From Setoptus koraiensis (Eukaryota > Animalia > Arthropoda), in NCBI GenBank assembly GCA_048013815.1, contig CM106586.1, forward strand, positions 10,106,001 through 10,170,000: 64,000 nucleotides of DNA. The letters run 5' to 3'. A model generated the notes under the pieces. It saw only the letters and a list, made by a program, of their open reading frames with translations, was not told the DNA's origin and did no database searches. This document shows, one piece after another, positions 4,639 through 47,300 of the stretch. Each line of letters starts with the position of its first letter. Position 1 is the first letter of the stretch. The translations under genes and the position numbers were made by a program.

Positions 4639-6291
4639 TTATCGTCTATTGTAATTATCTACTTGAGTGGGACTTCTTGACCTTGAGTTGTAGTGTGGAT
4701 GTAGGGGATTAGCCTCGGATAAGTAGGAGAAAGGACGGTTATGTCTGTCAAAATTGCTTCTACCTAAGTATAGATGCTGATCAGAGCCCCTGGAGAATGA
4801 CGATGTGGAGTTATTGTTCATTAGTGTCATTTGTGCTGCTGGCACTGTACTAATTTCGCGCTGCTGTGATTGGAGATTAGCTGTAGAACCTGGCCTATCT
4901 AAATATTCAAATGGTCTGTGATTTAGAGGCCTCAGAATCACTTGTTCAGGTAGCGTCAATTCAGTGTTATCTTTGAGATGGCGCCTATCTAGACTTTGTG
5001 TCGAATAAGTCATCCCCGGTACCTTGGGAACAACATTGCCTTGTGTCCTGTTGTCATAATCTTGTTCCAAGTAATAGTCATTCATGTAGGCAGGATCCAT
5101 CACAGATTGATGCTTTTGATTGGCAGAGATGATGTCACAACCGTATTGATTATTGTTGTTCCGGTGGCTCGGATGGTGTCCGATTCTATAATGTCTGTGG
5201 TTGATATCACAATCTGCACATTCCGTTAAATCATCTCTGACAAAATTTGATTTGGCAATGCTCAGTCTATTTGCTGGTGGAACTGACTCCAGTTGTCTAA
5301 CATGGTCGTATCGGTCCGCTTGTAGTGTTAAAGATGGAAAGTGAGGACTTGAGAATACTGGATTTATTGTAGTTGATAGTGAGTCGCCTATGAAGTAAGG
5401 TGAGTCATATCCATTAAATCTGGTTGCATCGAATCTGAAGAACTGCTAAACTCATCATGAAGTGTGATAACAACAAGTTGATTTAGGTTATGTAAGACGA
5501 AAAAAGAAAATAAGTGGTCAGAGTCAATAATGATTGAAGATGACACAAGGAGCAATACTGATAGTTGTGGAAAGCGCGTGGTTGGTGGCAGAGTTTTGAG
5601 GTTAGTTGTCAGGCTAATTCAACTTACGCTTTTTTCAAACTTCCAATCCTTGTAGAGCTGATGGCCCTTAAAGATAAATATCACATCCAGGACGGCACGA
5701 ATAGCGTAAAATATCAATTCTGTTTGCCCATTGCGGCTGTCGATTCCCTGTGTTCAAAAGAAGAAGTTATTAGGGTCATTATACAATTAGTATGAGTTTA
5801 TGGTAGCGATGACGTTGAGTAATGAGAAATGTCTTGTACATTTGTTTGTGTGACAGATGATAGATATAATTACAAATCAAACTACATGTAACGTTAATAA
5901 CAATAGTAGTGAAATGAAATGTGAGAGAGAAAGTACTTACCCACTCATAGATGGCAACATAGACTACTAGCCCAAACTCTGGCAAATAGAGCACCATCTT
6001 TATTGTGAGCCATATTATTATGCACATGTTGGAGCGCATTATTAATGCCACAATCAATACTAATGATGATAAAAATATTATAAAGTATAATATTGCAATG
6101 GCTAAACATGCTAAAGCTAGTTGAGATTTGGCCTTGGACAGAAAATCTATACCAAGTGCGGCGTCGCCCCGTTTTGCCAAGTCAATAATAAATAGTATCT
6201 CAATTGTGAATGCACTTAGATAGGCCACAAAAGCATAAATCGCACCTAGAAGCGTATAAAACTCGTTTCTGGCTCGACTTTCGTAGCGCAT
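4639..6291 (-). CDS. Four-transmembrane membrane protein with a long cytoplasmic tail, family not recognised; exons 6291-5941, 5747-5628, 5442-4639 (~424 aa)
   Basis: Two canonical GTAAGT..CAG phase-0 introns join ORF 5779-6291, a 120-bp exon (GIDSRNGQTELIFYAIRAVLDVIFIFKGHQLYKDWKFEKS) and an exon running into ORF 4639-5103. Four hydrophobic segments are present. Confidence 0.8.
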
Positions 6292-22880: not shown

Positions 22881-23640
22881 ATGCCGAAGGATAATTGCAC
22901 AACCAGATTCGCGAAGACTCGATGCTGGCCCAACCTGCCGCACTCTATGAGTGTGTGTTGCGGGCCCGCCGAAAGCGGAAACATATTTTATCATTTTGTT
23001 TAATGGCCATCCGCATCGCATTATTATTATCATGTTCGTGTCTAGGTCAACAGTGGCCACAATATTGCAGTGGCGACAACGGGCTTGCGCGTGATTTGCC
23101 CGCCAGTCGGTGACACTGCATCGCGAGTTGCGACACCTGTTGTCGCTGTCGAAGCGGTTGTTGCTGTCACGACACACTCTCAAACTGACTCGTTGCGTCT
23201 CAAACTGACGATTTGAATTATCTTTTATTGATCTGTCATGAGCACATGCGATATTTTGGCGATCATTGGCGATCTGCGATCTCAAATGTCAAACGAAAAT
23301 CAGCACAAGTCAGCATCATCATCAGAAAATTACCAGAAAGTTGCAAGAGACATGCAGTGAATCAGATGCAAATGCTAGTGTCAATCAAACGTCGACATCA
23401 TCATCATCTCAAAGTCACTGTCAAACACAATTATCAAACACGATCATCCGACACACTTGTCCGGCACAATTATCCGACTCAATTATCCGACACAATTACG
23501 CAACAAACAGAGCACGGCATATAACACTGTCATATCACATCGCAGGTGAGTAGATAACCAACGAGAATCAATAGAATAAATCAATGGAATGCGCGCCAAG
23601 CGGAAGCAGCCATGTGGCGGATGCTGGTCAGTTGCTTGTT

Positions 23641-23736
23641 GCTGACCAATAGTGAGCTGGCCAATAGTGAGCTGGCCAACAGTGAGCTGGCCAACAGTGA
23701 GCTGGCCAACAGTGAGCTGGCCAACAGTGAGCTGGC
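23641..23736 (+). repeat. 15-bp tandem repeat GCTGGCCAA(C/T)AGTGA x6.4
   Basis: Six complete units with no spacers. Confidence 0.95.
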
Positions 23737-24142
23737 GACACTTAATTGATCTCGAGTCAAGTCATTATGTCATATCATATGACTCATGTGTTTGTTTGGT
23801 GTTGCTCGATGAGCAACCAATCGCCGGACAACAATAGCTGGCTAAAACGGCAACAGTTGTGCAGCAACTCGACAACAACAAACAAAGTTACCGTTGCTTC
23901 GTTTGCGTGAGAAATGACAAATCTCACACCAATCTCGCTCAATTTGTCATTGTTGAGCTCGTTTGCTGTCACTTGTTTGTTTTGGTAGCAGCCAGCTGAG
24001 TGAGTTGTCCGTTGAAAGTTGACAGTTGACAGTCGAGCTGCAAACAAACCATCAACCACCCACCAGCTGACTGGCCAGCTGACCGACCATCAGCTGACCA
24101 TTGCCGCTACGATGCCTATTGACCGATCTTTGCGCTCTTACT

Positions 24143-25905: not shown

Positions 25906-28900
25906 ATGCTCACCAAGTATCATGCGATAATATTTATATCTATACTCACTATGCTGGTGGTAAGTAGACAACTATCTAAATACTAATAAATAGTTATTAC
26001 GCTATTTTTATCTTCGCAAAGATTCATGGATTTACCGTGTGAGAAGAACTTTGATCTCGAATTGACCCTCTTGCAGGAATCATTCCAAATGATAGTCAGC
26101 CATCTATTGACGGACCCAAACAATAATGTTCGCAGAACGATATTAACTTCAAATATTTCGAAACTATGCTTGTTTTTCGGAAGAGAAAAGACTAATGAGG
26201 TCATTCTAAGTCACATAACTACATTTCTGAATGACAAGAGTGATTTCAGACTACGAGCCGCATTTTTTGATAATATAAACTGTGTGAGCACATATTTGGG
26301 GCCTTATTTTGCTGCAATCTTAAAACCTATAATGCAACAAGGATTATCAGATAGTGAGGAGAGTATCATCTATAAATGTTTGACAGCGGTCTCCTCTATG
26401 ACACAACCAGGTTTATTGAGCAAAAGTGTTGTGTATGAACTTCACCAGGAGGCCGTGCCACTATTATCGTTCCCCAACAAATGGATAAGGAATGCAGCCA
26501 TCAATTTTGTGGTAGTTCTAGCCAAAGTATTGAAGTCTTGAAATCTTGCCTCGATGCTCTGGATAGCGACAGGGTTCAAGTTGCTTTAAGAGTTGCCTCA
26601 ATAGCGGAACAATTAGTTGATCGATGGTCTGTCAAGTTCGAAATATACGATTGGGATCTCATAATAAACATCTGTGATTCTTTTGCTAACAAGCTGACAA
26701 AACCCTCCTCTGCTCTGGCACCTTTCAATGGCCATCCTCAGAGCAACACTAATTCAACAACACCATACCAATCGGCCCCGCCATCTAACAACAGTACCAT
26801 AAATAGGTCGTCCAATTCGACAACATCTTCAAACCATAATAACATTCAATCATCCAATAACATTTCCCAATATGCAATGAATTTGTCTTCTATTGCTCTT
26901 ACCAACATATCAGATCTTATGTATCATCTCAACAATCATGGTCAGTCATTTTCCCCATCAAGTGATAGCCTACCCAACAGGAATGATGAATCTCTAGAAA
27001 TGATACAATCTACACTTCAACACCTCACTATGACACTATTGAATGAAAGTACTCATGGTAATATATATAGCTGTGATGACAACCTTTACAATTTGATTGA
27101 AAAATACTATCATTTATTTGACGAAACCATTATTATCGGTCTGTTGGAATATCGAACAAAGATCGTCAATACATTAGATGAGAGGTACATCTCTAACCTC
27201 TCAAGATTGATATCTAAATCTTTTAAACATGAATCACGGAAAGCAATCAGATTGAAATCAATAGCTGCCTTGTCGCAAATATTTTCCACTCACAGAGCTA
27301 TATACGAGGACGAATTGATGGAAAGAATATTCATCCCGAATTTTTTAAATGCTGATCAAGAAAATGATCTTAGCATACGCAAATCAATCGTTTACTTGTT
27401 ATTGGACTTCGCTTCTATGTGCCTGAATCATAGGCATTGCCTAGAGGCTCTAAAGATGGATAAGGAATGCAGCCATCAATTTTGTGGTAGTTCTAGCCAA
27501 AGTAGCTTCAACAATCGATTTCAACAGAAAAATTCTACCTGCTATCAAGCTGCATATCAAGAGAGACATTCACGGACTAAAAGACGAGAGTGTTCTCCTT
27601 GATTCTCTGCAAGAACCCCTTCCTAGGCCTATCATAGAATCTATAATTTGTGACAATGGTGATATTGACAATATTTTTCATTCAATTTCAAAGAAGAAAA
27701 TGTCCCGAAACAGTCAACGCTTTAGTGGAGCCAAGCAGATGTCTGAAGACGAAGAAATTCTCGCTGGCCTAAGTAGACATTGTGAAGACAGGCTGATTGA
27801 TTCTGAGTTGATACTTCGACGGATTCATAAGAATAAGAGAGGTGCAGTTAACAAGATAGTCGAACCCACTATCAACATTCCCAAGCAAGATGCGCAAATC
27901 CAGAATACCTCCAAAGTTGAGCAAAGAATGTCCGCGACTTTATCTCTATCAAAGTCAACAAAACCACGCGGTGTCCTATTAGCTCATTTGCATGAACACA
28001 AGGGTACTATAACTAACTTCAAATATTCCGAAAAACAGGCATAATTTCGAAATATTTGAAGTTAGTATCGTTCTGCGAACATTATTGTTTGGATCCGTCA
28101 ATAGATGGCTGACTATCATTTGGAATGATTCCTGCAAGAGGGTCAATTCGAGATCAAAGTTCTTCTCACACGGTAAATCCATGAATCTTTGCGAAGTCTC
28201 TGCTAAGTCAGCCACATTTGAAGCTAGCGATATTCTTACGAGCACTGACTTATCATAGACAAGGGGACACAGACTTGGTAATATATAATCTATGAATACA
28301 TTAGCGTCACTGGGTAGCAGCCGATCAACATGTTTCAGAAGTATATTAAGGGAGGATATGGCTGATGAACGAACTTGTGCGTCTGTACTTGATATCATAT
28401 AGATGAAATACGGTAACACTCTATCAATCACATATTCTGACATTATATGAGGCGAAGATTCCACCAATCGTACACATAGTTTAAGTGCCATAAGTTTGGC
28501 ATGTGTAAGCCTCAAAGTCCGCAACGTAGATGTTACTAACACTAGTGGTAGTAAAAGTCCATGCTCGTCTTCAGTTATTATCTCCGTAAGCAAAGCATCG
28601 ATGTCCTCAGTCAAAGATAGGATTTTTGTGTCAGGACTTTGAGTTATAAGCTTCGTGAAGTACTTGAATAATGTGTTAAAGTAGGCAGGAAACAAGCTAG
28701 GGGTAGATTGATCGAGATGATAAGACGCAGAATTTCTTTTCATACTATCCAAATCAGTAAGATTGAGTATTAGCCTTGCAATCCTTGAATCGGATATACC
28801 ATTTTCAATTATCTTTGAAGGTTCATACTGGTTCTTTTTAAACATCAGTATCTGACCAAGATCAAACAAAGAGCTGTTAGCGTTGTCTTCCAAGAAAAGC

Positions 28901-31900
28901 TCTGCCAAAACACACCCTAGACTGAATAAATCCATTTGAGGAGTCAGCTGATTATAACCATCATTTTGATCAGTTGCTTCAGGATATTGCTGATAGTTTG
29001 TCTCGTTTGGTGCTGTCTCGACAAATCTCTCAGGGGCCATATTACAACATTGGCGCCGAGAAGTGTCGAAAAAATATGAGAAGTCGGATGGGTTATTTTC
29101 AGGCAGCGTTACTGGCTTGTAGGAGGCGAAATCCGTTATTGATACCCACAAAAACGACGAAACCAGAACATTTTCGGACTTGATGTCGCCGTGAAAGATG
29201 TTTTTCTTGTGCAGTAATTGTACACATCTTAGTAGTTGATAAGCAATCCATCTTTTTTCTATGGAAGTCAAGAAGGTCCATTTGTATGATCCTTGAGATC
29301 CTGCATGTGTATACTCAAAAAAGATTGTAATCTTATCTCGATCTGAATATAAATTCATTAACTAATTATTTCTCCCAATCAATTACCTATCCACAATTGC
29401 TAAAAACAACAACAAAATTGCTGTATGCCATAATTTGCTTGATCAGTTGCTTGGTCTGCACTTGCTAAGCATCGCGAGTAATGTAATCAACCATCAGAAC
29501 AGCACCGGCTCGGCCTCTCAGCCAGGGGCAGCTCTGGCTAGGGGTGCGCAATCCCAGAATAACTTTGTGGCGACCACCAGCACCAACAGAGGTGTCCCAA
29601 TAACAACAACAACATCTAACAACAATGATTACACTCATCCTATCAGTTTCGACCGCATACTGTCCAGCAGCAACAACAGACAGGTTAATAGTGACCAATT
29701 TTCCAGCAACACCAACAACAACAACATCAACAATGACAACAATCAACAACAAGTGACAACGGCCGGCATGAGGCGTCTGGTCAATCAGCCAGAGTATCCC
29801 ATTGATCATTATCAGATTAGTCAATCAACCAATCAACCCTTGGACAATCAGATACCTCCCACGCCAACGCAACAACAGCAGCAGCAAACACCACAAGCCA
29901 ACAACAACAACATCAATAATAGGCAATTCCACAATCCCTTCGATAGTCCGTTCAGTCCTCCCGTGCCCCCGTTGCCGCCCAATCCGCCCCCGTTGCAAAC
30001 TAATCCGCCCGCTGTCCAGTCGCCCGTGTCCGGCTCACAGCACCAATCAACGCAATCGCCGCAAGCCTCAATGACGGAATCCATCACGGCCACCAACCAG
30101 CCCCAGCAGCAATTCAACAATCAACAACAGTCGCCACCTCTGGCCAACGACAACATCAACAACAACGGCAACAACAACAACCGACCACAGCAATACAATT
30201 CGTTGAGGCCCCTATTCGTTCCGGGCGCGATTTCTTCGCACACAGCGACTCCTGGCGGCGGTGGCGGCGCCCCAATGAGATTGACCGATAGAAATCAGCA
30301 GCTCGATAGTGATACCTATACGCCGCCCATAGTGTTCGGCACCAGCAGCAACCAATTGGCCTACAACAATCAAGATGCTCCGTTTGGTTTGAATCAGCAA
30401 CAGTTAGACGCTCACAACGTCTACGACCAAGTCGCCAACAGCGGCGTTGACTCGGCGAACCCTATGAGGGACCCCAACAGAGACCAAACGAACAGCAACA
30501 ATTTCCAAAACAGAGCTCGACTGGCCCAATTGGAGCCCAACGGCGACATCGGTCGCCAGCAGCAGGCTCCTCGGCACCAGACGTCGCCCTTGCCGGCCTC
30601 CTATTTTGAGCAGCGTCACAAGCAAGCGCCCGACTCAAACAGAAGCCCGCAGCCACAAAACAACAGGTTGTCTAATTTTGTGCCCACAGGTGAGTACGCG
30701 AGCAGCGATCTCAGTATCGGTTTGTGTCGGCAACCGGACTTAGATGCGCCGATATCAACTTGACTTGATTGGCTCCACTTCCGGTCACACTTTTCGCACT
30801 ACAAAATGATGCAATAATTAATTATTGCATCATTTGTAACAACAATAATTAACTAATTAATTATTTAATCAATTACAGCCGACAATATAATAATTCTGAT
30901 TCCGAATCTCTTTTCATTCTCGCACAATTCCGACGTTAGACAAGCGCATTTTGCCGCCTCCCGTGCCCGCTCACTACAAAGATGCGCATTTGAACATGGC
31001 GAGGAAACTTCCGCCGCCAATAAATGCAAACATTGACATAACGAGAAACCTGTCGCCATCTAGATTCGCCCATGGCCAATCACCAAAATACCATGCAAAC
31101 AACAACAACAACAATAGACAGCTCACCGGGGACGCTGCACCGGATGTTGGACTGACGGCCTTGCCGCCGTACTCATTGCCTGTTCCTCCGTCGTCGTTGG
31201 AGCAACAGCAGCGGATAAATCACAATTTAGAGCATCAACAGTTGCAACAATTGTCCGCACAGATACCGTTGTGTGCCCGAGCGTTGGGCGCCAGCGCCAA
31301 CGACACTCATCACAATCAAGTGATAATGTGTCAAGAGGACGCCGATTATCCGACCAAAGCTGTGATGGGCGCACTAGAGTTGTACGGGCCCCAAATACTA
31401 GAACAAATAATGCCACAAACAACAACGGTTATCAGCAACAATCACCTGTCCAAGCAGCGTCAGCAGCAACAGTTGCAGATGGACTCGCTGAGGCCGGCCC
31501 CAATTAATTCGCATCATCGTGATGCGCACAGCATTAATGTTAATAATAACAACAATTTCAAGACCAACAGCTACGACAATTTATGCAAATCAAAAATAAC
31601 GCTAGTGCAACCGAGACGAGCCAAGAATCTGCAGGGCCAATGGAAGGTTGTGGTGAATTTTCCCAATGCGGACCGCTTCAGGGGTATCAGTCTAAGCCAG
31701 CCGGTGCGGATAGAGGAGTGCCTGATGCCGATGAACAGCAACAATCAATTTGCGGAGTGCGGAGGTCCCGACAGAAACAACAACATTACCTCCACCATAC
31801 CCAAGACGAGATGCTTGCAGCAATACGGCGATCACCGCCTTGTGGCGTGGTCCTCGCAGCGGGGCCTGCACGTGGACATGTTCCGGCTGCCCGTCTCTTG

Positions 31901-31922
31901 CTCGTGCCACCTGAGACGATGA
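25906..31922 (+). CDS. Spaetzle-family cystine-knot ligand, most like neurotrophin 1/Spz2; predicted exons 25906-25959, 29447-30689, 30940-31922 (759 aa)
   Basis: The C-terminal knot LCKSKITLVQPRRAKNLQGQWKVVVN...SQPVRIEECL...RCLQQYGDHRLVAWSSQRGLHVDMFRLPVSCSCHL and the prodomain CQEDADYP motif are typical of the family. Exon 1 MLTKYHAIIFISILTMLV (GTAAGT at 25960) joined at TGATCAG|29447 to LLGLHLLSIAS gives a signal peptide. Intron 30690-30939 is phase-consistent and the total length 2280 nt is divisible by 3. Exon 1 is inferred. Confidence 0.8.
26012..26182. repeat. Inverted repeat arm A (171 bp; partner at 28026-28196; 4 mismatches)
   Basis: Manual reverse-complement comparison. Confidence 0.95.
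26481..26529 (+). repeat. 49-bp perfect direct repeat copy 1 (copy 2 at 27456-27504)
   Basis: ATGGATAAGGAATGCAGCCATCAATTTTGTGGTAGTTCTAGCCAAAGTA occurs at both positions. Confidence 0.97.
26530..27455 (+). pseudogene. TSC2: Internal fragment of tuberin (TSC2/gigas), N-terminal helical region
   Basis: VLKSCLDAL...YDWDLIINI and LLEYRTKIV...YISNLSRLISKSFKHESRKAIRLKSIAALSQIFSTHRAIYEDELMERIFIPNFLNADQENDLSIRKSIVYLLLDFA align with human TSC2 VAWDILLNI and LISYRAQSI...[76 protein letters not shown]. Confidence 0.85.
27456..27504 (+). repeat. 49-bp perfect direct repeat copy 2
   Basis: Identical to 26481-26529. Confidence 0.97.
27456..28010 (+). pseudogene. PIK3R4: VPS15/PIK3R4 fragment C (end of HEAT region to the start of the first WD40 repeat)
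   Basis: Continues WIRNAAINFVVVLAKVASTIDF...LLDSLQEPLPR and ends at KPRGVLLAHLHEHKGTI (VPS15 PKGLLVAHLHEHKSAV). Confidence 0.88.
28026..28196. repeat. Inverted repeat arm B (171 bp; partner at 26012-26182)
   Basis: Manual reverse-complement comparison. Confidence 0.95.
28026..29342 (-). pseudogene. PIK3R4: VPS15/PIK3R4 fragment A (pseudokinase domain lacking its N-terminus, plus first HEAT repeats)
   Basis: FLTSIEKRWIAYQLL...HGDIKSENVLV...TDFASYKPVTLPENNPSDFSYFFDTSRRQCCNMAPERF is diagnostic of VPS15. The myristoylated N-terminal part (MGNQL...) is not seen in the window. Confidence 0.9.
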
Positions 31923-32340: not shown

Positions 32341-35300
32341 TTAATAGTTGGCTGAGGGCGCGACGGCGGGCCGGTAGTTGGAGGCCATGGGCACGCCCTT
32401 GGGCAAACTGAGCTCGTCTTCGGTGAATTTCAACCGGAAGCCGCGTCCAATGTTGTTTTTGTTTGTGACCAGCTTCAGCAGAACGCTGGCACCCTGCGAC
32501 ACGTACTCCTGGGGCAACTGGTCGCCGCACAGCGTCAGCTTGAGCTGGGGCTCCGATTGGAGCTGTCTGTCCAGGACTGAGGCCCACTCCAGCAGTTGCA
32601 AATAGTTTTGATCGCATTTGTTGCGCGACCCGCTGCCGCCGTCCGTGTTAGCCGCGCTTGCCCGCATACCCGTGCCCGCCGGCTGGCTCACCAGAGACAT
32701 ATCCTGCCATGAGAGGCGCAGTTTGTGCACTCCGTGGCCGCTTATCAGCCAGTAAGTCGGGCCCGACTGTTGCTCGCCCGTAAACGGATTGGGATAATTG
32801 GGCGACGCGACGCTGCCCGAGTAGCCCGTGATGTTGTAAAAGTTGTACCTGGGAAGCGAGTAATCACGCCCTTCGGGAGCCCAAGCTCCGCCGCGCGGCT
32901 CCGGTATCGCCGACGAGAAGGTTATTTGATACCGGACAATGTCGGCGTGCAACTTCAGCTCAACGTGACTCGACTGAGTGTAGACGGGATTGGGTAGATT
33001 GCGGCCGCACAATTTGGCCAGGCTGCGCCGGACATTGGTCACCGGATCCAGCTCGTTGATTTGCATGTAGTTGGAGGCGCACATAATGAGGCCGGCGGTG
33101 GGATCGGCCGCGCTCGTGCCATTGGCCGCCGTGGCGGTCGCTCGGTCGTCGTCGGGATCGTCTGTCGACTCGACCACAAACTTGGAAAAGTACAGCACAA
33201 TCCTGTGCTTCGGCGTGGGCGCCCTCAAATCGATGACGCAATCGCTTGCGGTCGCGGTCGTCGCGGTCGCTGCGGGTGTCTCGTAAATGCCCCGGGTTCG
33301 GTACTTGACGGGCGTCATGAGGACACCGTTGTCGTCGTTGATGGTCTCGTTGCAAACGCTGCTGTCGCGATAGGTGATCTGAAAGCCGGTCGGTTGGCCC
33401 CTTTTGGGTAGCCGCGACGACACGAATGTCATGCGGAAACCGTCGCTCACGTAGATCGGTTGCGGGATGCGCTGACCGCACAGCCGTGCGGTGTCGCCCG
33501 TGCCGCTGTAATAGTTGGCGCGGTTTGAGTTGCCCGACGACGGTTGCAGCATTGAAGTCGCTTCGTAGTCGATGATTTGACCGTTCGAGCCGCTCGTCAG
33601 CACGGGAATCTGGCTTTCGAGCTCTAGGTAGTCGCCCGCGGCACAGTCAATGTCGAAGGCGGTGAATTGGAGCCTCTCGAAGAGGGCGCTCCATTGCATC
33701 GAGTTGAGGTGCTTGTCGATGACCATCATGACCGCTCGGTCGAGCAGCGCCCTATCGGACAAAGTGGTCAGGTTAGCGCCGGCCGCTTGGTCCGCCTGGT
33801 CGGACTCGGACACCAGCTCGAATTGCCAGACGCAGCGGCGCAGCGGCGGGTAGGCCAACGGGAAGTTGGGGCTAGCCAAAGTTCGGGTTGGCGAGCGCTG
33901 TTGGCCGGTTGGCGCCACCGTCGATATGGTTTGTTCTGTGGTGTTTAACCAGACGATACCGCCGCAGTCGCGCTCCACCGAGCTAAATTTCAGCCTGAAT
34001 CCGGCCCGCACATTCTGGGTGTCCGTGTGAAAGTGAACGTAGAGCGCGTGTGCGGAGCTTTGCATGGGCGCGGGCACCTCGGAGCCGCACACCCGGTCAA
34101 TGAGGCCGCTCTTGTGGCTAAGACCGTCGCGAATCTCCAGATAATCGTAGACGCAGCGGTGGCCGGCGCCCGGGCCGGTTTTGTTGTCCGACGGCGACTG
34201 GGGCGCCTCTAGGTCGAATTTGACGAAGTCGAGCCGCACAAGTTTGTTTTTGTTGGGCACCGTTATCAGCCACCAGCAATCGAGTTGATTGTCGTAGTTG
34301 CCGTCCTTGTCCGCGTCGGGCGATACAATGACGCCGTCGCTGTCGTGCAGCCGCCCCCCGCAGCCCTGTCGCTCGCCCAGGCTCGTCCGGTAGGTGGCCT
34401 CGAAGCCCTTGCTCTGCAAATTGAAGTCGGTGCTGAATTTCACCTGCATCACGTTGCTCTTGCTTTTCACGACGGGCAGCTGACTTCCGCCGCCCGGGTA
34501 CGTTCCGCAGAAGCGGCCCAGCAGCAGCCCGTCGTCCGGCGTGCGCGTTTTGTTGGCTGCCGCGCGGGGCGGGACCGCGCTGGGCGCCAGTCCCGTGTCG
34601 CGCAACTCCACCGAGTCGCAACCGCACGAATCGCACGACTCCAGCTCGAGCCGGTTGAACACCAGCTCAACAATGCGGTCCCGGGCCACCGTGATGGTCC
34701 ACACGCAGTTCATGTCGGGCAGGTACGTGCCGCCGCCCGAGAAGGGCGCCAGCATACCCGACGGCTCGGTCAATTGGCCGCCGCACTGGGACGACTCGTA
34801 CACCAGCTTGAAGCCCTTGGCGCGCGCGTACCCGTTTGTGTGCAGGAAAACCTTGATTTGTTCGTACCCAAACACGGACGGGATGGTCTGTTTGCCGCAA
34901 TAGGGCCCCAATTTGCGCCAGTTTTTCGCCACCCGCTTGCTGGTGTCGTTGGCCGAGGTGAGGCGCGCATACACGTACACATAGTCGCTCAGACAGCCCC
35001 GATTTGCGCCCCCACCGACGCCGCCGCCCATTTGCCGGCTGCCGCCAGCCGCTTCCGGTTGCTGCTGTTCCAGTTCGAAATCTTCGAATTTCACCATGAC
35101 AAACCGGCCCGGTCTCTCGTGCCGTATTGTGTATTCGCAATTCAGGTTGTTGTCGTACGGGCGCGGGTAATGGGGCGACGTCAGCACGCCCCTGGCAGCC
35201 ACCGGGCCGGTGGTGTTGTCGCTGACGGTGAACAGGCCGCCGCACACGGCCTCGTAGTTGAGCTTGTAGCCGGCTCCCTCAATTTTGTCGTTGCTCTTGA

Positions 35301-38300
35301 ACGTTATGCGGGCCCGATTGTTGCTCGTCACAAACGATCCGCCGGGCCGCACAAAACCGCAGAATTTGCCTAGAACGGGCGCGCCCTGAGTCCGCCTCGG
35401 CCCGTCGTCCACTATCATCTGACCGTCGCTGTTTATGCTGACGTCGGGCACGCTGCCCGAACCGCTGCTGTTGCCGCCCACCTGGGCGCCGGCGAACAGC
35501 GGATCCTCCAGCTGGACGTAGTCGTTGGCGCAATCGTCGGATTTCTCCAGCTCGAAGCGCCCAAAGAAGCTCATGTTGACCCGGTAGCCGGGCGGCAAGC
35601 TGATGTCGTAGACGCAGCGGGTGTTGTTGGCGTACTTCTTGAGCGGATCCTGGATGGCCATGCGGGCGCCCCAGCGCGGGCCGGTTTGCACGTCGCGCTC
35701 CCGGGGCGACCTTATGGTGCCGCGCAGGTAGTCGTAGAACTTCTGGCCGCAAACGCCGTCCACGATGGTGCGGATGTCCATCTGAAAGCCAAATAGATCG
35801 GGCGTTTGCGTGAACGGCCGCGACACGTTCGACTTCAGGTCCGCGGCAGGGGGGGCGGGCCGCGCCGCAGCCGGGCCGTCGCTGTCCGCGCTGAGCCGGT
35901 GCTCTCGGAAGGCGCCTACAAATATGATCGAAAACGGTCGGTCGTCCATGGTGAGCACGGTGTCGTTGTTGAGCTTGGCCGTGTTGGCGTCCTCGGCGCA
36001 GTACCGCACCACCAGCGGCGAGTCCATGAGGACCCCGCTGCGGATCTCGACGAAGTCCTCGCTGAGGCAACCCGTTGACTGTTTGTTGGCCTGCTTGTCT
36101 TGCGCAATCGTCGGGCGCAAATTAAACGAATCGAAGCGCAGTTCGCGCAGTGAGCCCCACGAATGCACGTCCCATTTGCATATCCGCGGCGAGTAGGAGC
36201 CCGCAACGGGCGCAGCCGTCGAGTTGCCGCCCCTCGCTTGCGTCAGCGCATAATCCGTGTGACTGGCTATTTTGCCCGTGAAATCGTACAACCGTCCGCC
36301 GCAATCTTGCTCGAAATATCTGCCCCGAACACCGCGGTAGAAGGCGCCCACAGATTGATTGGCTGGCGACAACGGCGGCCCGCCGGTGACGGGCAAATTG
36401 CGCGTATGTAGCGAGATGAACGGATCGGGAATTGTGGGCACAAACACGTGATAGTACCATTGGCCCGTTTTGTTGCCACACACCATATCGGCGGGCTCCG
36501 CAGAACCGACAGCGCCCATGAGCGGGAGGTCGGTGGGGCCCAGCGTCAGCCCGTACATGCCGCACTGGGCGCCCACTGTGGGAGTGTCGCTGTCGGCGTT
36601 GTTGGCGTTGCCGATGACGGGTATTTCGAGCACGTCGAATATCACGTAGCTGGTTCGCTTCTTCCAATTGCTCATCGTTCTCACGGGCCAGTAGCAGTCG
36701 ATGTCGGCGGAATCGGCCCCCGTCCCGTCGTCCGTCTGATTGAAGCGGCCGCTCACAAAGTAGCCGCCGCTGTCCGCTGGCGCTGCAAACGGATCCGGGA
36801 TCGCTTCCCATCGGGCTCCGCCGACGGAAGCGGCGCCGGCGCTTGCGGGCCCGTCGACAGGGCTCAGCGGGTACACGAGGCTCCTGCTGCACAGTTTGTC
36901 CTCCTTGAACGAGAAACTGGCCGAAAAGCCCTCATCTTGAGCCAGATATTTGCTCGAGAATCGCACCAGCAGCACGTTGCTTGTCGACCTGATCGCAACT
37001 GGCGCGGGACCGCTCGTGGCGCCCGCTTTGTCGTCAATTGCGTGAACTGCGGGCCGCTTGATGGGCCGGCCCGTGGCGTCAAACTGTTGATCGCGGTCGG
37101 CCGCACTGTCCGACGAATCGGCCGCCTGTTTGCCGTACGACAGCTTGCAGTCGAGTTGCTTGACGTGCCCGAGGGCGACCAGTTTGTCCATAGCGTCGCC
37201 CGACAGGCTGGCCCAGCGGTCGTAGTAGTCGACCATGCGGCTGTAGTACAGTTTGTCCACACATTTGCCCTGTTGGTTTTGCTTCAAATTCAAACTGTCA
37301 AAGGTCAGCTTGACCGCACCGCGCCACTCGGGCACCTTCATCGTCCAGCTACAGGTGCGCTCCTGGGGCATGGGCTGCGGGAAGTTGGGCGACTGCAGCG
37401 AGCGGTCGGTCTCGTCGAGGTGGCCGCCGCACCGGGTGCGGCCCGCCTCGTCCGCCGTAGAACTGGACACAAACATGTGAAAACCGCGCCCGGACACGGC
37501 GTTGTCCGTCTTGAAAATGACCGTTATGACGGGTCCCGTCGACTTGACTGTCACCCACAACAGTTTGCCGTCGGGTCCCCATTGCACCGCTTGCTGTTTG
37601 CGCGTGGCCACACTGCCCACCGTGTCCTGCCACCGGTCCGAGCTAGCGGCCAGCTGTATGTCGGCGGTCAGTAGGCGGCTCGACGCGGTTCCGTTGTTGC
37701 CCGTCGGCGGCTCGCTCGCCTGTTTGGCCTGTTTCATTTGCAACAGTTTGCCGTTGCACCATCTGGCCAGCAGGGGCGCGTCGCTCGTGTCGCCGTCCCT
37801 AAACTCGAGATAGTCGCCCGTGGAACAATCGGCGCTTTGGCCGGCCAAATCAACGTCGTACAATTGCGCAATCAGTGTTTGTTGGGGCGCCGCGGAATGC
37901 AGATAAAATTTGCAATCGCGATTATTGGTGTAGTTGCGCGGGTAATTCTTGCTTTGCAAACGCAAGCCCGACACCACGTGATAGGTGCCGCCACAGTCGT
38001 TGATGGTGACGCGCGCCTTGAAGGCGCCCAGCGCAACGCGGGCGCCCGCTGGATCCGCGCCCGGCGCGGTCAGCCCGAGCCGCTTGCCCGGATTTGTGAC
38101 AAAGCGCACAAACATGTGATTGTCCGTCGACTTGACACTGTTGGCTCGCGGCGGCAAACAATATTTCACCAGGCGGTGCGACAGAGTGGAGCCCCCGTCG
38201 TACACGGCCACAAACTCGGTGCTGGCGTCGCACTGCTGCTGCCCGGCCAGATAATTGGTGGACATTTCGGCGCCCGCTTGCTGCTGTATGAGCGCCTCCT

Positions 38301-41300
38301 CGGTGGCGCTAGTGTCAAAATCGAGCCGGATAATGGAGTGCTCGTCGGTGTACACCAGCCAGTTGCATTCGATGTCGTGCGGGGGCGCCTGGGGCCAGTT
38401 GGGCGAGCGCAACTCGAACGAGGGCTGCTCAGAGCTCAGCTTGACGCTGTCCGAGCATGATTGCGACAATTCGCGGTACGCAAGCGCAAACTCGACCCCG
38501 TTGTAAGTGTCGGGCACGTCGGTCGCCCGCTTGGCGTCGCGCCCGGGACCCGGCAAAATGGCGCCTCGATGGAACTGAACCAACAGCTCGTTGGAGAAGG
38601 ATTCGGCGGGCAAAACGGGCAACTTTGTGCCGCACAGGCGCTGTCGGGAGCCGAACTGGGGCCACATGTCGGTGGGCCCGTTGTACAAGGTGAAATAGGA
38701 GGCCGAGGCGCCCAGGCAGGCGTCGCGCAGCGTACTGTTGGTGTTCGAGTTGGAGTTGGGCAGCAAAAATTTGCTGAACGACAGGCTGATGCGGCGGCCG
38801 GGCCGGACTCGGATCAGCCACTGGCAATCGGTAGAGTTGATGACGTCGTATTGGCTCAGCCGGTATTGGCGGTAATTCTCGAGCAGGCCACCGCACCGGG
38901 GTTTCAGTGTCAGCTTGAACGACACGACCCCGGACTGGCCGCTGCCCGTACCCGCCTCCTGGTACCGTTGATACCGGTGCACGTAGGTGATTCGGGCCAT
39001 GTTCGAGGCCAAGCGGAATGTTTGCCGGCGCCGGCCGCACAACGTCCTGTTGACCGACCAGTCGGCCTGAGCAATGCTCACGGGCGCCACAACGCCCTGC
39101 TCCGCAAAATCGCTTCCGCCCGCAATGTCGCCCGGCCCGTCGGCCAGAGACGGTGCGGTGCCCACTTCGAATTGCAGCCGCTCGTAGTAGCAGGCCTCGC
39201 TGAAGCTGTCCAAATTGAGCTCGCTGATGTCCACTTGGAAATGCGACCCGGGCCTCGTGACGAACGTCCACGAGCAGCTGGAATTGGGCCGGAAATCGGA
39301 CATGATTATGGCCGCGGGCAAGCCCGACTCGTCGCCATCGGCGGGCCGGTTCACCGTCAGGCCGGCATCGTCTTGGCCCGTCTTGGGCACAGATCGTGAC
39401 TCGCCCGCGCTCGAATTGGCCTGCGACGGGTCCGCACCGTTTGCCGGCGGGGGCCAGCTAAGCTCGAAGGGCTCGCTTCGGTTTAGCATCAGCTCGGTGA
39501 AGTGGCAGCTGTCGCTGGGCCGGCCCGACGCCTGCGGGCCGGCACCCGGCTCGGGCACAAACACATTGGCGCTGCTTCCGTTTACGTGCGCAAACACGGG
39601 CTCCAGGTTGAGAGACTGCTGCGAGGCGGACACCCGCGACCAGCGCATCAAGAAGCGACCCTCCGAACGTTTGTTCTGATAAATCACATACAGCCAGTTG
39701 CCCCGGCTCCTCAGGCGCCTCGACAGGTCCTGGCGAACGCGAGGGTCTCTAGCGGCGACCACGGGCGCCCTATTCTGATTTTGGTTGGCCGAGGCGGAAG
39801 TGGCGATGTGCTCGTACGACAGGTAACCGCACAGGGTGGCCAGGGGCCTCCCCCATTTTGGCTCGAAGTCGTAGATTAAGATGGCGTCTAGGTCGCAATC
39901 TTGCTCTATGGAGCCCAAGTTCAAGTCGAGCAATTCCAGCTCCAACTGGTCGCCCTCTTCCGTTTCCAAATGCCAGCTTATTGATGCGTCCAGTTTGGTC
40001 AGCATCGGGTACATGGGCGAACTGATGATGCCGTAGTCGACGGGTGCTGAGGCGCGCGTCGCCAAAATCTGCATGCCATAGTGAATAGTGTACTCCAACC
40101 GGAAGCCCTTGCCCGTCTGGCTGGTGTCGTCCGTTCGGAAGCGAATCCACACCTCGTCGGTCAAGGTGACATTGTGGGGTAATTCCGGCTTTTTTGTGCC
40201 GCAGTACCGGCCGATGAGCACCGACTCTTCCCATAGACTGTCCGTATTGTAGGCCAGTCTGTTGTGCGACGAATCCTTGATGTTCCTGCCCACACTTTCA
40301 ATTGTTTGCGACGACACGGGCCGGTTTGCCTGGCTGGTGGTCGCGGACAACGGGCCGGCGCCCGTTGCGGCGCCCAACGTCGACCACAGATACTGCTTTT
40401 TCCACATGGGCAATTGTCGCACCTCCACATAGTCCAAATTGCAGTGCTCGCTGTCTTGCAAATCAAAATCCACGAACTCGAGCGTTATCGTGTGACCGGG
40501 CGACGCCTTGACAAAATAATTGCAATCCATGTTGGGCTCGTAACTGTTCGGATAGTTGGGGCTGGCGAAGGAGCCCCGCTGCGACCAGTAGTCGCCGCCG
40601 CAAAAACCGTTGGTGTTCCTAACGATGGAGCGCAGCACAACGTCGCCCGTGGTCACCAAGCTCATGCTGGGCCCCACCGACACAAACTCGTTTTTGGCCA
40701 CAATGTCGTCGTTGTCGCACAACACATAGCGCGGCCTAATGCTGGAATTGGTGCCGCTGTCCGCACCCGCACCGGAAGCCGCACCCGCGCTTTCGGCCGC
40801 GTTGGTAAGCGGAAATTCGGTCATGTTCAGGCTGAACGGGGTGCCCTCAAACAGTCTGACGCAATGGCTCCGCTTGTCCCGGCTGGACTCGACCAGATGA
40901 GTTATCGAAACGACAATCTTGTCGCCCGGGTCCTCCGATATCAGATGCCACAGGCACATTTGCTCCCGGTCCGAGGCCAGCATGCTGCTGGCGCCCGCCT
41001 GGCGCCGCTGGTACCAATTGGGCCGGTTCGGGTAATTGGGCGTTTCCACTATTGCGGGCCCCTGTCCGTAGTGGAGCGCCGTCGGCTGCGCATTCTGCCG
41101 GACGCGCACCTCTGAGCCGCACAATAGCCCGTAGCTGAGCTTCCATTTGCCCGCCAGGGTGCCCTTGGTCTGGAACACAACCCGAGCCCGGCTTTCACGG
41201 GTCACGCTCACCACGGGCTGACCGCCCAACGAGGCACCCAACGAATTGTCTGGCACGCTGCCAGTGTATGCCGGTGGCGACCATTGGCCACAGTATTTGG

Positions 41301-44300
41301 CCAATTGGCCGAATTGGTTCGACCATCGGGCCGCCAACGACAACACCTCCTGCAAGAGCAAGAAACTTTTCGAGCCGCACGGGTCGGCCCGGTCGATGCC
41401 GGTCTGGGCCGGTTTGGTGGTGCCGGTCGTCGCCGACCATTGCGGATCCTGCCAGTCTTGCGGTACGGGTATGTCGAGCTCTTCGAGGCGCATGCGAATG
41501 CGATTGTAATGGGGCACCGTTATGTCGTACTCGCACCAGTTTTCGTTGCTGTCGTAGTCGCTCGGGTAGTTGGGCGACGTCAGAAACGAGTCCATGGCCA
41601 GCGGAACGTTGAGAGTGGGCGTCATAGAGCGGCTGCACGATCGCGAACCCGACGAGGAGAAATAATTCAGGCGGAAACCGCGCGCCCAATGCAGACCGGC
41701 GCTGAAGAATTTTATATACAACTTGTTGCTGGTTGTGGGCAACTGACGGTCGCCGTCCCGCTGACAAATAGACAACAGCAGCGGTGCGGTTTCGCTGTCG
41801 CCCGCGTAAATGTTCAAATAGCCCGTGGAACAGTCGCCGGGCGGCGCCATTTTGTCGCCACTCAGCGGCCCGATGTCGGACTCGAGCGCGTGCAGCGCCA
41901 GCGAGGCGCTCGACAGTGGCGACGCCACCGTCCATATGCACTCGACGGGCCGGTCTTCGCTCAAGAAATACCTGATCTCCTGTGACCATTCGTTGGACAG
42001 GTGACCGCCGCATCCGACACTGCGCCACTCCAACCGGAAGCCCTGCCTCTCGAAGGTTCGGTCCGTGCGGAAGCGAACAAGGGCCAAGTTAGTGTTGAGC
42101 TCAATGAGGGCGTCGTCGCCGTGCGTCTTGTCCCGCAAATCGCCGCACATTATCCGCACCAGTGTCGCGCCCCTTGGCGGGGCCTCCGTGTCGGGCGTCC
42201 GGCCCGACTTCATGGCCTCCAGGCCCTGCTGCTGCTGGCGCTGCGACTGGCTGCCGTTGGCCGCCCTCGCCTGTGCCTGATCCTGCCAAAACAGCTCCTT
42301 TGTCAGCTTGCTGTTGCTCGAGTTGAGGGCCCATATTTGCACGAAATCATCGACGCACCAGGGTCGCATAGATTTATCCGTGGGCGCCTCGGCCGTCTGG
42401 CTAACGTTCGCAGTGAGGCTCGTTAGTTGGTCGACTGCGGCCAAAAAGCGATCCGCGTACTCAAGTTTCAGGCTCACCACGCTCATGCTGATGTTGCTGC
42501 CGAGGGGCGCCCTCAGCAGCCAGTGGCAATTGAGCTGGGGCGCGTACGTGTTGGGATAATTGGGCGACTCTATGGCTCCCTGGTAGCCGGAAATGGCCAC
42601 AAAATCGCAATCGGTCACATAGGTGAGCCGAAAACCGCGCCCGGTGCCGCGGGCTTGCGCCGAAACGAAGCGCACTTGTACTTTGTTGCCGCTGGAGCGG
42701 ATGTGAACGGGACCCGACGCCAGGCTGCTGTTGGCGCACCATTTGCCCAGCGACAACTTGTTGGCCGAAAAGTCCGAGTAATCGCCGTCGAAAATCTCCA
42801 AATAGTCGCCCTTGCGGTTGCAATTGGCCGCCTGAGCCGCGTCGGCGGCGCCCCCGCTCCCGCCCAGCCACAAGTCCTCCAGTGTTAGCAGCACCACGCT
42901 CGATTGGCTCACCTCTACCGACCACGAGCAATCGGCTTGGTGGCCGTACGGTCGCGGGTAGTTGGGCGACTCTATTTCGCCGCTGGCGGTGGTCAGTTTG
43001 CCGCCGCAGCCCGTTAGCGCCCCGTCGAAGCTCATGCGGAAACCGGGCGCGGAAAAGGTTGCGTCCGAGCGGAATTGCAGCCACACGTTGTTCGAGTGGG
43101 ACAGTATGATGCGCGACTGCAATTGTTTGCCACAAAATCGGCCTATCAACGGAGAGTCCTTGTTGGGTCCGTTGCGCAATTCCAGATAATCAAACAGACA
43201 CTTGCTTTGTCGTTCGAGCGCAAACTGGCTAAAGTTCAGTCTGATCTGTTGGCCGTTGTCCGCGTGAATGGTCCACGTGCACTGGGCGCCCGCCGGGTAC
43301 CGGTCCGGATAATTGGGCGTCACAATGGTGCCCGAGTCGTGTATGATGTTTCCGCCGCACTGATCGGGATTGTCGCTAAACTTGTACCGGACGGGTATGA
43401 CCTCCAGCGGTTGCGGTAACCACTTGTTGGGCCGGGACGAAACGCGGCGCGACCACTGGCTCGCGGGCACATATTCGCGCACCCGGATGTGCAACACATT
43501 GCCCGACGAACTGACCATTGTGGGGGGCAGTTGCGACGGACAATAGGAGCGCGTTTGGTTGGTGTTGGGGTCGTGCAGCTCCACAACCTGATTGAATATA
43601 ACGGCGCATTTTGAGTAGGGCGTCTCGGGCAGTTTGGAGGCCGCATACCAGAACGAGATGCGCTTCTTTTTCTTCTCCCTCGTTGGCCATGGTTGACTCC
43701 TTTTCGTCCGATCGGACTCGCTCGAGTTGGCCGCCGCCGGCGCCGCCGCACGGGTAATTTCGTTGTTGTCGCTGGCGATGAATCGCTGGTAACCGGCCAG
43801 CGCCTCGTCCAGTTGCCTGTGATCGGGCAAAAACTCTAGCTCTATTCGCTGGCTCGAGTTTGCTCGCAATATCCACGAGCATTGCACCTTAGCGACCAGT
43901 TTGTCCCAGCCCACCCCGGTTTCTCCCTTTTCCACTAGGTCGTCCAGCTTGAGCTCTATGCTGCCCTGAGCGGGCTCGCTGATTATGCCGCCGCAAGCCC
44001 GTTCGCCCCTGTATTGCGCCCGGAACACCATTGTGGCATTTTGGTTTCGGGCCCCTGGCGTGCGTTTCACCAGCAACTGGAGATGGTTCCATTCGGACTC
44101 GTAACTGAACGACGCCCAGCACATCTCTACCTCCTTTATGTCGTACGTTTGCGCCCACGACAGCTGACTCTGTTTGAATTCGCCAGCGACACCGGAAGCG
44201 GGCGCCGAGGCCGCTTTTCTCGCCACCAGAGAGTCGTCGCTCGTGGCGTCGGTATCGGACCACGCCGGCTTGTAGCCCAGATCCTTGGGCAGTCCGGTAC

Positions 44301-47300
44301 TGTGATCGAGCGACTGGTGGTGCATGGCGCCGTCGATGAATATCATGGACACCTCGCAACTGTTGTTTGTGGGTCCGTCGCGCCTCCAGCCAAGGCTGAG
44401 AGGCTGCAATAGGAGCACAATTATGTAATCTTTGGGCAACCGGATGTCGTACAGGCACCAGTCGACATTGGGCGGCAGCTCGCCGTAGAACAGGTCCACT
44501 TGGTCTCTAAACGAGCCGCTGCAAACAAGCTTGTATTGGCCCCTGAAGCCCACAAGTCCGCGAGCGGCGCCCCTGTCCGACGATTCGTACACTATGTACA
44601 ACGAGCGGCCCGACGATTCTATTGGCTTGTCGGGCATTTCAGACTCGCAATACTTGCCCAACAGGGCAGCGTTCGAATGCGACCCATCGTACACCTTTAT
44701 GGACGTAGTGACACAACGGGCGTTGGCTTGAGCCCCCGCCCCCGGGCCGCCACCCAACCGGAAGGTGTGTTTGCTCATGTCACCAGCGGCGGCGGACCAG
44801 TCCGTTTGAGTGCGATGCTTCGTCAAAATCTTGTCCCAGCCAGCTCTCATCATCCTCGATTGCGGGATGGCGGGCGCCGAGGTGCCCACAAACTCCAGCA
44901 GATCGAACCGGATCTTGACGTACTTGTCCTTTTGGCTGGTTCGGATCTCCCACTCGCATCTCATGTTGAAATTGTCAGAATCGCCAATGGTGGCGTCGTC
45001 GGCCGCCAGTCCGCTTCGGTTGGCCGCAGCGACGTCCGCCATTAGCTGCTCGCCCGTTGCAACAGCATCAGGGCGGCCTTGCTGGCGCCCAGAGAAATAG
45101 GGCGACACAATGACGCCCGACGGACCGCTGAACAGGCCGCCGCAATTTTGTATGCCCGGCTCGGCTGCGTACGTAATGTAGAAACCCTGGGCACTCTTGT
45201 CCAATTGCGACAATATATTTGTGGGGCCTGTATCCGAGTTGAAGAAAATTTCCGCGGTGGAGCCCGAGGTGAGAATTGGCGCGGGCAGAGCCAAGCGAGC
45301 TCCCGTGGCTCCCGCACTCGACGAACAGTATTTGTACAGGAGCAGCTCTTCGTGGAACCTGGAGATGCCGTCGTATATGGTGAGCTCGTCGCCCCGACAA
45401 TTTCGTGCCGACTCTTTCGGCGTAGCGCTGGCCACTGGCGGCGCTACGCCCAGGTTGAGCGCCCCGAAATGTAGCCGAATGCGCTTTCCGGCGGGCACGC
45501 GGATGTAGTAGGTGCAGTAGCGCTGTTTAGGATATTGGTGCGGATAATTGGGCGACGACACATAGCCAAACTCCTGGACGGGATAGTCGAAGTGGCACAC
45601 GGGCTCCATTTGTTGCCAGCGGAACCGGAAGCTGAACGTTCGCAACACTATGGCTCCGTCTAGCGCGGGTTGGGCCAAACTTTGGGATATGTTTAATTTG
45701 TACACAATGTTCAACTGATTGTGGGTACTGTTGTACACCTTGAAGGGTGGTTTTTTGGGCACCGTCGACGACTGGTTGCCGGGCGCCGCGCTAGCCGTCT
45801 TGACATCGTTCGGACATATTCTGCCCAGCATTTGTTGCTCGCCGTCAATGGGCGGCACATCGGTTATGGTTAGGTATTCGTCGTTGCAATTATCAATTGT
45901 TCGGGTTTCGGGGCCCGCCGTCAGGGATTTTCCGACGAGATTGCTGGTTGGGCTTGACAAGAGATCAACTTGGTCAAATGTGAGCATGATGGCCTTGTCG
46001 GTGGGCAACTTTATGGACCATTCGCAGCGAATCTGTTGCACCAGACTGAAGTCTAGCGGGTACGACACGGAACCCTCGTGAGTCTCGAATAAACCGCCAC
46101 AAGAGGGCCTGAGCTGGTCGCACAAGCGGCCCGTGTAAGCGCTCGGGCATATGCACTCGAACGAGTCTCTGGTGTCGAAACACGAGCCACCGTTCTTGCA
46201 CGGGCTCAGCGGCAAACAATTGCTCGTTCCGACAACTTGCACCACCGACACGTTCTTTTGCTGTGTCTGGCCAGTGCCATTTGTGACCACTATGGAAATC
46301 ACTTGACCGGCGTCTTCGCCCGTGCCGAAATTAATCGCGTTTGGCTGCTGTGGCTCGTTCACCGCTACGGGCAACAGGCAACCCTGGTCGCCCACGCCCG
46401 AGCCAACATACGGGGGCGAGCAGACACAGTGGCGGAAATTCATTGAGATGGCCGTGTTCTCTAGACACTGGGCCATCGGGTGGCAGCCGCCGTTTGGTTC
46501 CGACTGACAAGCGGACACCCGCTGGCAGGTCAATCCGTCGCCCGCAAATCCGGGCGGACACAGGCCGCACTTGCGGCTACCGGGCAGATTGATGCAGTCC
46601 ACCAGGGGCGAGCAGCCGCCGTTGTTTGTTTTGCATTCGTCTATGTCGCGACACACCCTTCCGTTGCCCACGAAGCCGGGCGGGCACGGGCCACACTGAA
46701 AGCCGCCGGGCAAATTGATGCACTCCACCAGCGGACTTTGCGAGCACGGGTAGGCGCCGTGCCACGGACTGGAGCTTATGGAGTTCATGAATGACATTGC
46801 AACCGATTGCGCCACCATTTGCGTTGAGTTGTCCAGCGCACCAACGCCGTCCAGGTAAGACATCGATGTTCCGGCCAGCAGCGGATAAGAGGAGCATTCG
46901 TTGATGTCCACTGTGCAGGCGGGGTCGTGTCCGTTTGTTGTCCATCCCTGATCGCATATACACTCATATCTGGCCTGATTTGGCACTTGTCGTTGCAAAT
47001 TGATGCACTTGCCATGACCGCACAACGACTGACTCGAGCTGAGAGTACAATCGTCGTGCTGTTCGGTACAATGAATTCCGTGATAATTTGCCGGACATTC
47101 GCACCGGTAGCTGCCGACGATATTGATACATTTGGCCCCATTCTGACAGCCCAAATCGGTGCCGAGGAACTTGAGACACTCATTAATGTCATTGTCGCAG
47201 TTGGGCCCGTCAAAATTGCTCGGACACAAGCACCTGTAGCCATCGTACGCGTCCAAACAGGTGCCTCCGTTCTTGCACGGATTCTGGCTGCATTCGTCTT

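Follow-up and report, generated by a model that had tools for sequence, protein, structure and literature searches.

How did a stretch of TSC2 coding sequence come to lie between two perfect copies of the same 49-bp segment of VPS15 coding sequence? The question is raised by a locus of the eriophyoid plant mite Setoptus koraiensis, in a window of 64,000 nucleotides (the whole stretch of DNA analysed, i.e. positions 10,106,001 to 10,170,000 of contig CM106586.1, assembly GCA_048013815.1). Bare numbers below are positions in this window; C2 designates the chromosome to which the window belongs and C1 the other chromosome. The TSC2 stretch turned out to be one of four copied pieces joined in a 3.3-kb cassette (26012-29276). 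This cassette is probably a real, evolutionarily young, complex templated insertion, generated in one event of serial template switching.

Anatomy of the cassette

The cassette is composed of four pseudogene pieces: VPS15-B, TSC2 and VPS15-C, all on the plus strand, and VPS15-A, which is inverted. All four are 99.0-99.7% identical to their donors on alignment. The pieces, the fillers that join them and the repeats that they form are distributed as follows.

26012-26529, plus strand: VPS15-B, copy of C2:10183876-10184393, 518 bp, 5 substitutions, no indels; Pfam VPS15-like helical domain
26481-26529, plus strand: first 49-bp repeat, the last 49 nt of piece B
26530-26535, plus strand: junction filler TTGAAG, 6 nt, matching neither donor
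26536-27457, plus strand: TSC2 piece, 922 bp copied from C2:10260176-10259255, a segment inside one exon of a minus-strand donor gene, with 5 substitutions and no indels; Pfam DUF3384
27456-27504, plus strand: second 49-bp repeat, the opening 49 nt of piece C; the TSC2 piece ends on the same 2 nt (AT) with which this repeat starts
27456-28012, plus strand: VPS15-C, copy of C2:10184345-10184901, 557 bp, 5 substitutions, two of them the same two as in the 49-mer of piece B
28013-28025, plus strand: junction filler, 13 nt, exact reverse complement of 28053-28065 in piece A
28026-29276, minus strand: VPS15-A, inverted copy of C2:10182796-10184046, 1251 bp, 4 substitutions; Pfam Pkinase and VPS15-like helical domains
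26012-26182 (left arm) and 28026-28196 (partner): 171-bp inverted repeat with 4 mismatches, the donor overlap of pieces A and B

In donor coordinates, pieces B and C thus overlap by 49 bp in direct orientation, and pieces A and B by 171 bp in inverted orientation. Piece A carries the kinase C-lobe and the first HEAT repeats.

The locus was first noticed by a sequence-only reading, which described a 926-bp TSC2 fragment inserted in VPS15 between perfect 49-bp direct repeats. The repeats were borne out: the two 49-mers are 100% identical, start 975 bp apart and are the only two copies in the window, and their edges are sharp, the neighbouring sequence being unrelated between copies. The frames were also as described. 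The open reading frames (ORF) of VPS15-B and VPS15-C start at 26026 and 27484, a distance of 1458 (3 x 486), and therefore share a frame, while TSC2 is open in a different one, in an ORF of 373 aa (26481-27602) without stops; the VPS15-B frame, when continued into the insert, meets a stop at 26541. The gene names held as well, since Pfam identifies VPS15-like helical, HEAT and Pkinase domains on the flanking pieces and DUF3384, the tuberin N-terminal domain, on the middle piece. The size of 926 bp was right, but the make-up had to be corrected: the insert consists of the 6-nt filler (26530-26535) and a 922-bp TSC2 copy (26536-27457) whose last 2 nt lie inside the second repeat.

The donors and the question of a mobile intermediate

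Both donors are intact and lie downstream on the same chromosome. The VPS15 donor, about 50 kb away, is an uninterrupted open frame of 1242 codons in a single exon (C2:10182357-10186082), and the TSC2 donor is an intact exon on the minus strand about 125 kb away (C2:10259230-10260312). For each piece, the donor and the cassette copy are the sole matches in the genome, also at the protein level. The identity of VPS15 was confirmed by a protein atlas search; its nearest named homologue is that of the eriophyoid mite Aceria tosichella (58%), followed by those of other acariform mites, and a Logan protein is 96% identical to it. The chimeric 373-aa ORF has a sole match in the protein collection, the TSC2 exon of a related species (86% identity).

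The supposed insertion of TSC2 into VPS15 therefore did not stand: the interrupted "VPS15" consists of copied fragments, and the only full VPS15 of the genome is uninterrupted elsewhere. The VPS15-like and TSC2-like open frames of this locus are pseudogene pieces, a point of caution for annotators.

Gene pieces carried to a new place could point to capture by a mobile element of Pack-MULE or Helitron type, or to a reverse transcriptase jumping between VPS15 and TSC2 mRNAs. Such an origin would suit the exonic nature of all four pieces, three of which are sense on one strand, and a 58-nt element with two ~90% copies elsewhere adjoins the right end of the cassette. Most of the anatomy speaks otherwise, and we regard this explanation as very improbable. 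Neither terminal inverted repeats nor poly(A), a hairpin end or a short target-site duplication mark the ends of the cassette, and the cassette as a unit is single-copy in the genome; with no termini and no extra copies, transposition does not fit. Retroposition does not fit either: poly(A) is missing, one of the pieces is antisense and both donors are at about 125 kb or less in cis, a proximity that an RNA intermediate does not predict. The ends of the TSC2 insert itself, as the sequence-only reading had it, also lack a poly(A) tail and terminal inverted repeats. Loss of introns, which that reading proposed as a mark of RNA origin, could be examined but decides nothing, since none of the donor segments that were copied contains an intron. 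Transposon capture was rejected, no termini having been found and the 58-nt element having only two other short copies.

The proximity of the donors is informative in itself. The chance that two independent donors both fall within 130 kb of the target in a genome of 48.7 Mb is roughly 3e-5, which argues for a DNA-level process dependent on proximity.

Junctions

The three internal junctions show a 2-nt microhomology and fillers of 6 and 13 nt, an appearance in keeping with synthesis-dependent repair. At the junction between VPS15-B and TSC2, the filler TTGAAG is the reverse complement of VPS15 donor positions 10184395-10184400, just beyond the breakpoint, and was probably templated by this inverted sequence; it is also similar to the first bases of the adjacent TSC2 piece. 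The TSC2 to VPS15-C junction has the 2-nt microhomology (AT).

At the junction between VPS15-C and VPS15-A, the 13-nt filler copies, in inverted orientation, bases located 27-40 nt inside piece A (chance 4^-13). It lengthens a natural quasi-palindrome of 8 nt to arms of 22 nt (28012-28033 and 28045-28066). A junction insert templated in inverted orientation from within tens of nucleotides is what a snap-back scar looks like, and judging from its bases the filler carries the snap-back signature. Its first base pairs with position 28065, one of the sites at which piece A differs from its donor. Since the filler holds the complement of this variant, the variant must predate the junction, unless the arms of the palindrome were matched later.

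Divergence of the copies from their donors

Copies and donors differ at 17 unique sites in 3196 bp (0.53%), all of them substitutions; no indel was found anywhere. Divergence ranges from 0.3 to 1.0% per piece. The TSC2 insert aligned with the native gene has 5 substitutions in 922 bp and, like the other pieces, no indels, and pieces B and C together have 8 unique sites in 1026 bp. Similar values across the pieces are compatible with one event, although they are no proof of it. The "very recent" age proposed by the sequence-only reading holds only loosely: the figure of 0.53% is below the heterozygosity of 1.13% reported for Setoptus koraiensis.

The 17 substitutions comprise 11 synonymous and 6 non-synonymous changes. 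When polarised with relatives, the three amino-acid differences in VPS15 (I547T, L610P and G726A) are all derived in the window copy, as are at least two of the three in TSC2; I547T hits a residue that is invariant in six eriophyoid sequences. Derived non-synonymous changes of this kind are what an unconstrained copy shows. Because they fall at conserved residues, they point to real DNA that has aged and not to an assembly join.

An assembly or library artefact

A join made by the assembler nevertheless deserves attention, as chimeric molecules or a mis-joined path in the assembly graph could leave a 49-mer as an overlap-sized seam. The published assembly (two chromosomes, N50 24.53 Mb) was obtained from unamplified DNA of more than 100,000 pooled wild mites, sequenced at 496x in PacBio continuous long reads (CLR) and processed with Flye 2.6, NextPolish and 3D-DNA. 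Pooled mites with 1.13% heterozygosity, noisy CLR and short-read polishing may blur near-identical duplicates. Two patchwork sites (the second is described below) have exact repeats, one of 49 and one of 50 bp, as if the overlap had a fixed length, and the excess of synonymous changes would suit reads from a second functional allele.

The remaining evidence makes an artefact improbable. Flye 2.6 on CLR uses no 49-mer de Bruijn step, so that a comparison of 49 bp with an assembler k-mer gives no support to the k-mer-sized join offered by the sequence-only reading. The overlaps within the cassette are unequal (49 vs 171 bp) and that of the second site measures 50 bp, the copies differ from their donors, and the sequence is free of gaps and N over 24 kb around the cassette. 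The five derived amino-acid changes are not expected from reads of a functional allele. At 496x, reads of tens of kilobases should span the cassette and its unique flanks, and a rare chimera should hardly become the consensus. No whole-genome amplification was involved; a chimera of amplification was in fact ruled out, the source DNA being unamplified and the copies diverged from their donors.

The only run of N in the window is a stretch of exactly 500 N at 1719-2218, a scaffold gap of the kind left by Hi-C scaffolders, which fits the Flye/3D-DNA pipeline. The next 1 kb has 26% G+C.

Host gene and insertion site

The cassette appears to lie in the first intron of a Spaetzle-like gene, of which the following parts were recognized.

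25906-25959, plus strand: putative exon 1 of the Spaetzle-like host gene, ATG and 17 codons with a hydrophobic signal-peptide start; GTAAGT at 25960
25960-26011, plus strand: the 52 nt of host intron 1 that lie left of the cassette; unique sequence with no resemblance to that upstream of the VPS15 donor
29277-29446, plus strand: the 170 nt of host intron 1 that lie right of the cassette, with the 58-nt element and a terminal CAG acceptor
29447-31922, plus strand: downstream host exons, a Q/N-rich region followed by the Spaetzle cystine-knot domain

The host gene is identified by Pfam PF16077 (Spaetzle, E = 5.5e-17) on 30951-31922. Exon 1 joins position 29447 in frame, in phase 0, and hydrophobic residues continue after the CAG. 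On this predicted splice model the cassette would occupy a phase-0 intron that splits the signal peptide, and without it intron 1 would measure about 222 nt. Since the two exons, once joined, read as a signal peptide, an insertion in this phase-0 intron would be tolerable. The cassette would then be a non-coding cargo, predicted to be spliced out with the intron, its pieces decaying as pseudogenes. No functional VPS15 is disrupted, and the cassette disrupts no gene. Its flanks are unique in the genome; the region 16000-26011 matches elsewhere only through CAA/CAG simple repeats.

The 58-nt element adjoining the right end of the cassette occupies 29279-29336; its two ~90% copies are located at C1:5292064-5292121 and at C2:10103619-10103676. 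Read on the minus strand, the element contributes the ATG with which a 459-aa ORF, an accidental one, starts before continuing through VPS15-A.

Proposed mechanism

At this locus, at least two segments from separate nearby loci are joined in mixed orientation, the donors are kept, and one template has been copied again. The sequence itself shows how the cassette is built, that its donors are intact, what its junctions look like and how far the copies have diverged; a single event, its direction of synthesis and the enzymes that could have carried it out are our inference. A break or a stalled fork would have occurred in the short first intron of the Spaetzle-like gene, and repair synthesis would have switched among nearby templates of the same chromosome. 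It may have begun by copying the VPS15 donor from 10183876 to 10184393 (piece B). After the 6-nt filler it would have jumped to TSC2, about 125 kb away, and copied 922 nt, before returning to VPS15 through the 2-nt microhomology, 49 nt behind its point of departure, and copying to 10184901 (piece C). A fold-back with the 13-nt snap-back copy would have then led to the opposite strand of VPS15, copied from 10184046 to 10182796 (piece A), and the product would have been connected to the intron's other side. In kind, the sequence-only reading was correct with its templated insertion at a break; it was too narrow, TSC2 being only one of the four copied pieces of a 3.3-kb cassette.

Under this mechanism, both repeats, the direct one of 49 bp and the inverted one of 171 bp, are best read as donor stretches copied twice and not as target-site duplications. 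For the inverted overlap a target-site duplication is impossible, and re-copying of a template is thus needed in any case.

The 49-mers could also have arisen stepwise, a VPS15 fragment being already present in the intron when the TSC2 piece was added with duplication of the 49-mer. Two routes can be imagined: ligation of a TSC2 fragment into a break with 49-nt staggered ends, or integration by one crossover of a circle made of TSC2 and 49 bp of VPS15. The repeats are indeed perfect, sharp-edged and placed around a single foreign piece, and the perfect 50-bp repeat of the second site hints at a preferred length. Both 49-mers carry the same two differences from the donor, as if one of them had been duplicated in place, but two tracts copied from one template would be just as likely to have these variants in common. 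The divergence of TSC2 (5/922) is close to that of pieces B and C (8/1026), so that no difference in age is visible between the supposed steps, and a staggered break could not make the 171-bp inverted overlap found in the same cassette. We therefore consider the stepwise origin unlikely.

Besides this stepwise route, several observations weigh against one event of serial template switching. The differences between copies and donors are unevenly spread: piece A has none over 1183 bp (P = 0.0075), then four within 56 bp. Each of these four variants (28038, 28044, 28065 and 28093) is a transition and is synonymous when read in the VPS15 frame, and three of them fall on the first base of a Leu codon; the four lie within 68 bp of the fold-back junction and constitute the four mismatches of the 171-bp inverted repeat, piece B being identical to the donor at all four sites. 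The proportion of synonymous changes in the cassette (11 of the 17) is above the expectation of simple pseudogene drift. A single copying event from one template predicts neither this clustering nor the synonymous excess, which are likely to result from the copying of a different allele or homologue, from later gene conversion, or from polishing cross-talk in the pooled sample. The two outer junctions with the host intron show no clear microhomology on alignment. Finally, the structure is known from the assembled sequence only.

A diverged VPS15 paralogue was also considered as the source of the four clustered variants of piece A; it was ruled out, as the genome contains no third, diverged VPS15 paralogue.

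Comparison with known systems

Fork stalling and template switching (FoSTeS) and MMBIR (microhomology-mediated break-induced replication) are forms of serial replicative template switching that produce complex rearrangements, as does template switching during break-induced replication. The cassette resembles their products in its kilobase-scale segments, taken in both orientations from nearby loci of the same chromosome whose donors remain intact, in its junctions with 0-2 bp of microhomology or short templated fillers, and in its back-jumps that copy a template again. Related publications include PMC8421209 and PMC13065848. The cassette differs from FoSTeS/MMBIR products in being a fixed or high-frequency germline variant of a mite, 3.3 kb long and intronic, whose origin was not witnessed. 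Its substitution cluster near one junction is wholly synonymous, unlike the random errors of mutagenic synthesis.

Scars left by polymerase theta or by synthesis-dependent microhomology-mediated end joining (SD-MMEJ) are typically tens of nucleotides long. The fillers of the cassette are of this type: the 13-nt filler (28013-28025) is an exact inverted copy from 27-40 nt away at a natural quasi-palindrome, and the 6-nt filler (26530-26535) matches an inverted sequence just past the VPS15 breakpoint. Snap-back templated insertions have been described in Drosophila and C. elegans (PMC2943611, PMC5068794). In contrast to such scars, the fillers of the cassette join copied tracts of 0.5-1.25 kb, and tracts of this length would need a more processive synthesis of strand-invasion type.

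A foreign piece between perfect direct repeats of host sequence also recalls a transposon with its target-site duplication. However, the repeat measures 49 bp. Element termini, coding capacity for transposition and further copies are all missing, and what was inserted is part of a single-copy cellular exon.

Endogenous hairpin RNA (hpRNA) loci of Drosophila are born from inverted duplications of their target gene. Like them, the cassette has coding sequence of VPS15 in a 171-bp, 98% identical inverted repeat, along with a 1.25-kb stretch of VPS15 in antisense, within a predicted transcribed intron; it differs by a short stem, a loop of 1.8 kb and no sign of selection. That it might act as a hairpin-RNA locus is a possibility suggested by this arrangement.

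Recurrence, repair genes and significance

A second patchwork site is present on the same chromosome. It has a perfect 50-bp direct repeat, the two copies of which lie 1464 bp apart (C2:22342093 and 22343557; L012:4093-4142 and 5557-5606). The repeats enclose short pieces 97-98% identical to C2:15.649 and 15.652 Mb, 6.7 Mb away, together with older diverged pieces, and a palindrome directly follows the second repeat. This site is more tangled than the VPS15/TSC2 cassette, and its second repeat is in a native gene context.

Searches of the two chromosomes for the Ku core (PF02735) and Ku N-terminal (PF03731) domains, performed without a eukaryotic positive control, gave no match. The genome contains Dna2 and two family-A polymerase genes (family-A match of 323 bits). 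The non-detection of Ku, no more than a lead, may mean that this mite has lost classical end joining. A broader proposal would be that eriophyoid mites mainly repair germline breaks by synthesis-dependent, template-switching end joining, and that the cassette is a newborn source of small RNA against VPS15; we consider this proposal a long shot. If true, it would mean that kilobase-scale patchworks of gene pieces are written unusually often into streamlined eriophyoid genomes.

Taken alone, the cassette neatly illustrates, in natural material, an insertion made by several template switches; all its junctions are readable, down to the exact 13-nt copy left by the snap-back. This kind of structural mutation is known, and the cassette adds one more case of it, an ordinary and well-preserved scar of error-prone DNA repair. 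Its wider value is that of one data point in a pattern, a very small mite genome that seems rich in patchwork duplications of this type and has no detected Ku. From this pattern a testable statement could be derived on the pathways of break repair that mould streamlined genomes and give rise to gene fragments, chimeras and inverted repeats.

Other features of the window

Upstream of the Spaetzle-like gene, about 8 tandem copies of the 15-nt unit GCTGGCCAAYAGTGA are present at 23626-23745. On the minus strand, 32341-47811 is occupied by a single open frame of 5156 codons with EGF and CUB domains, cubilin-like. The G+C content of this frame is 58-64%, compared to ~38-45% in its neighbours, a strong gene-by-gene shift of composition in an intron-poor genome.

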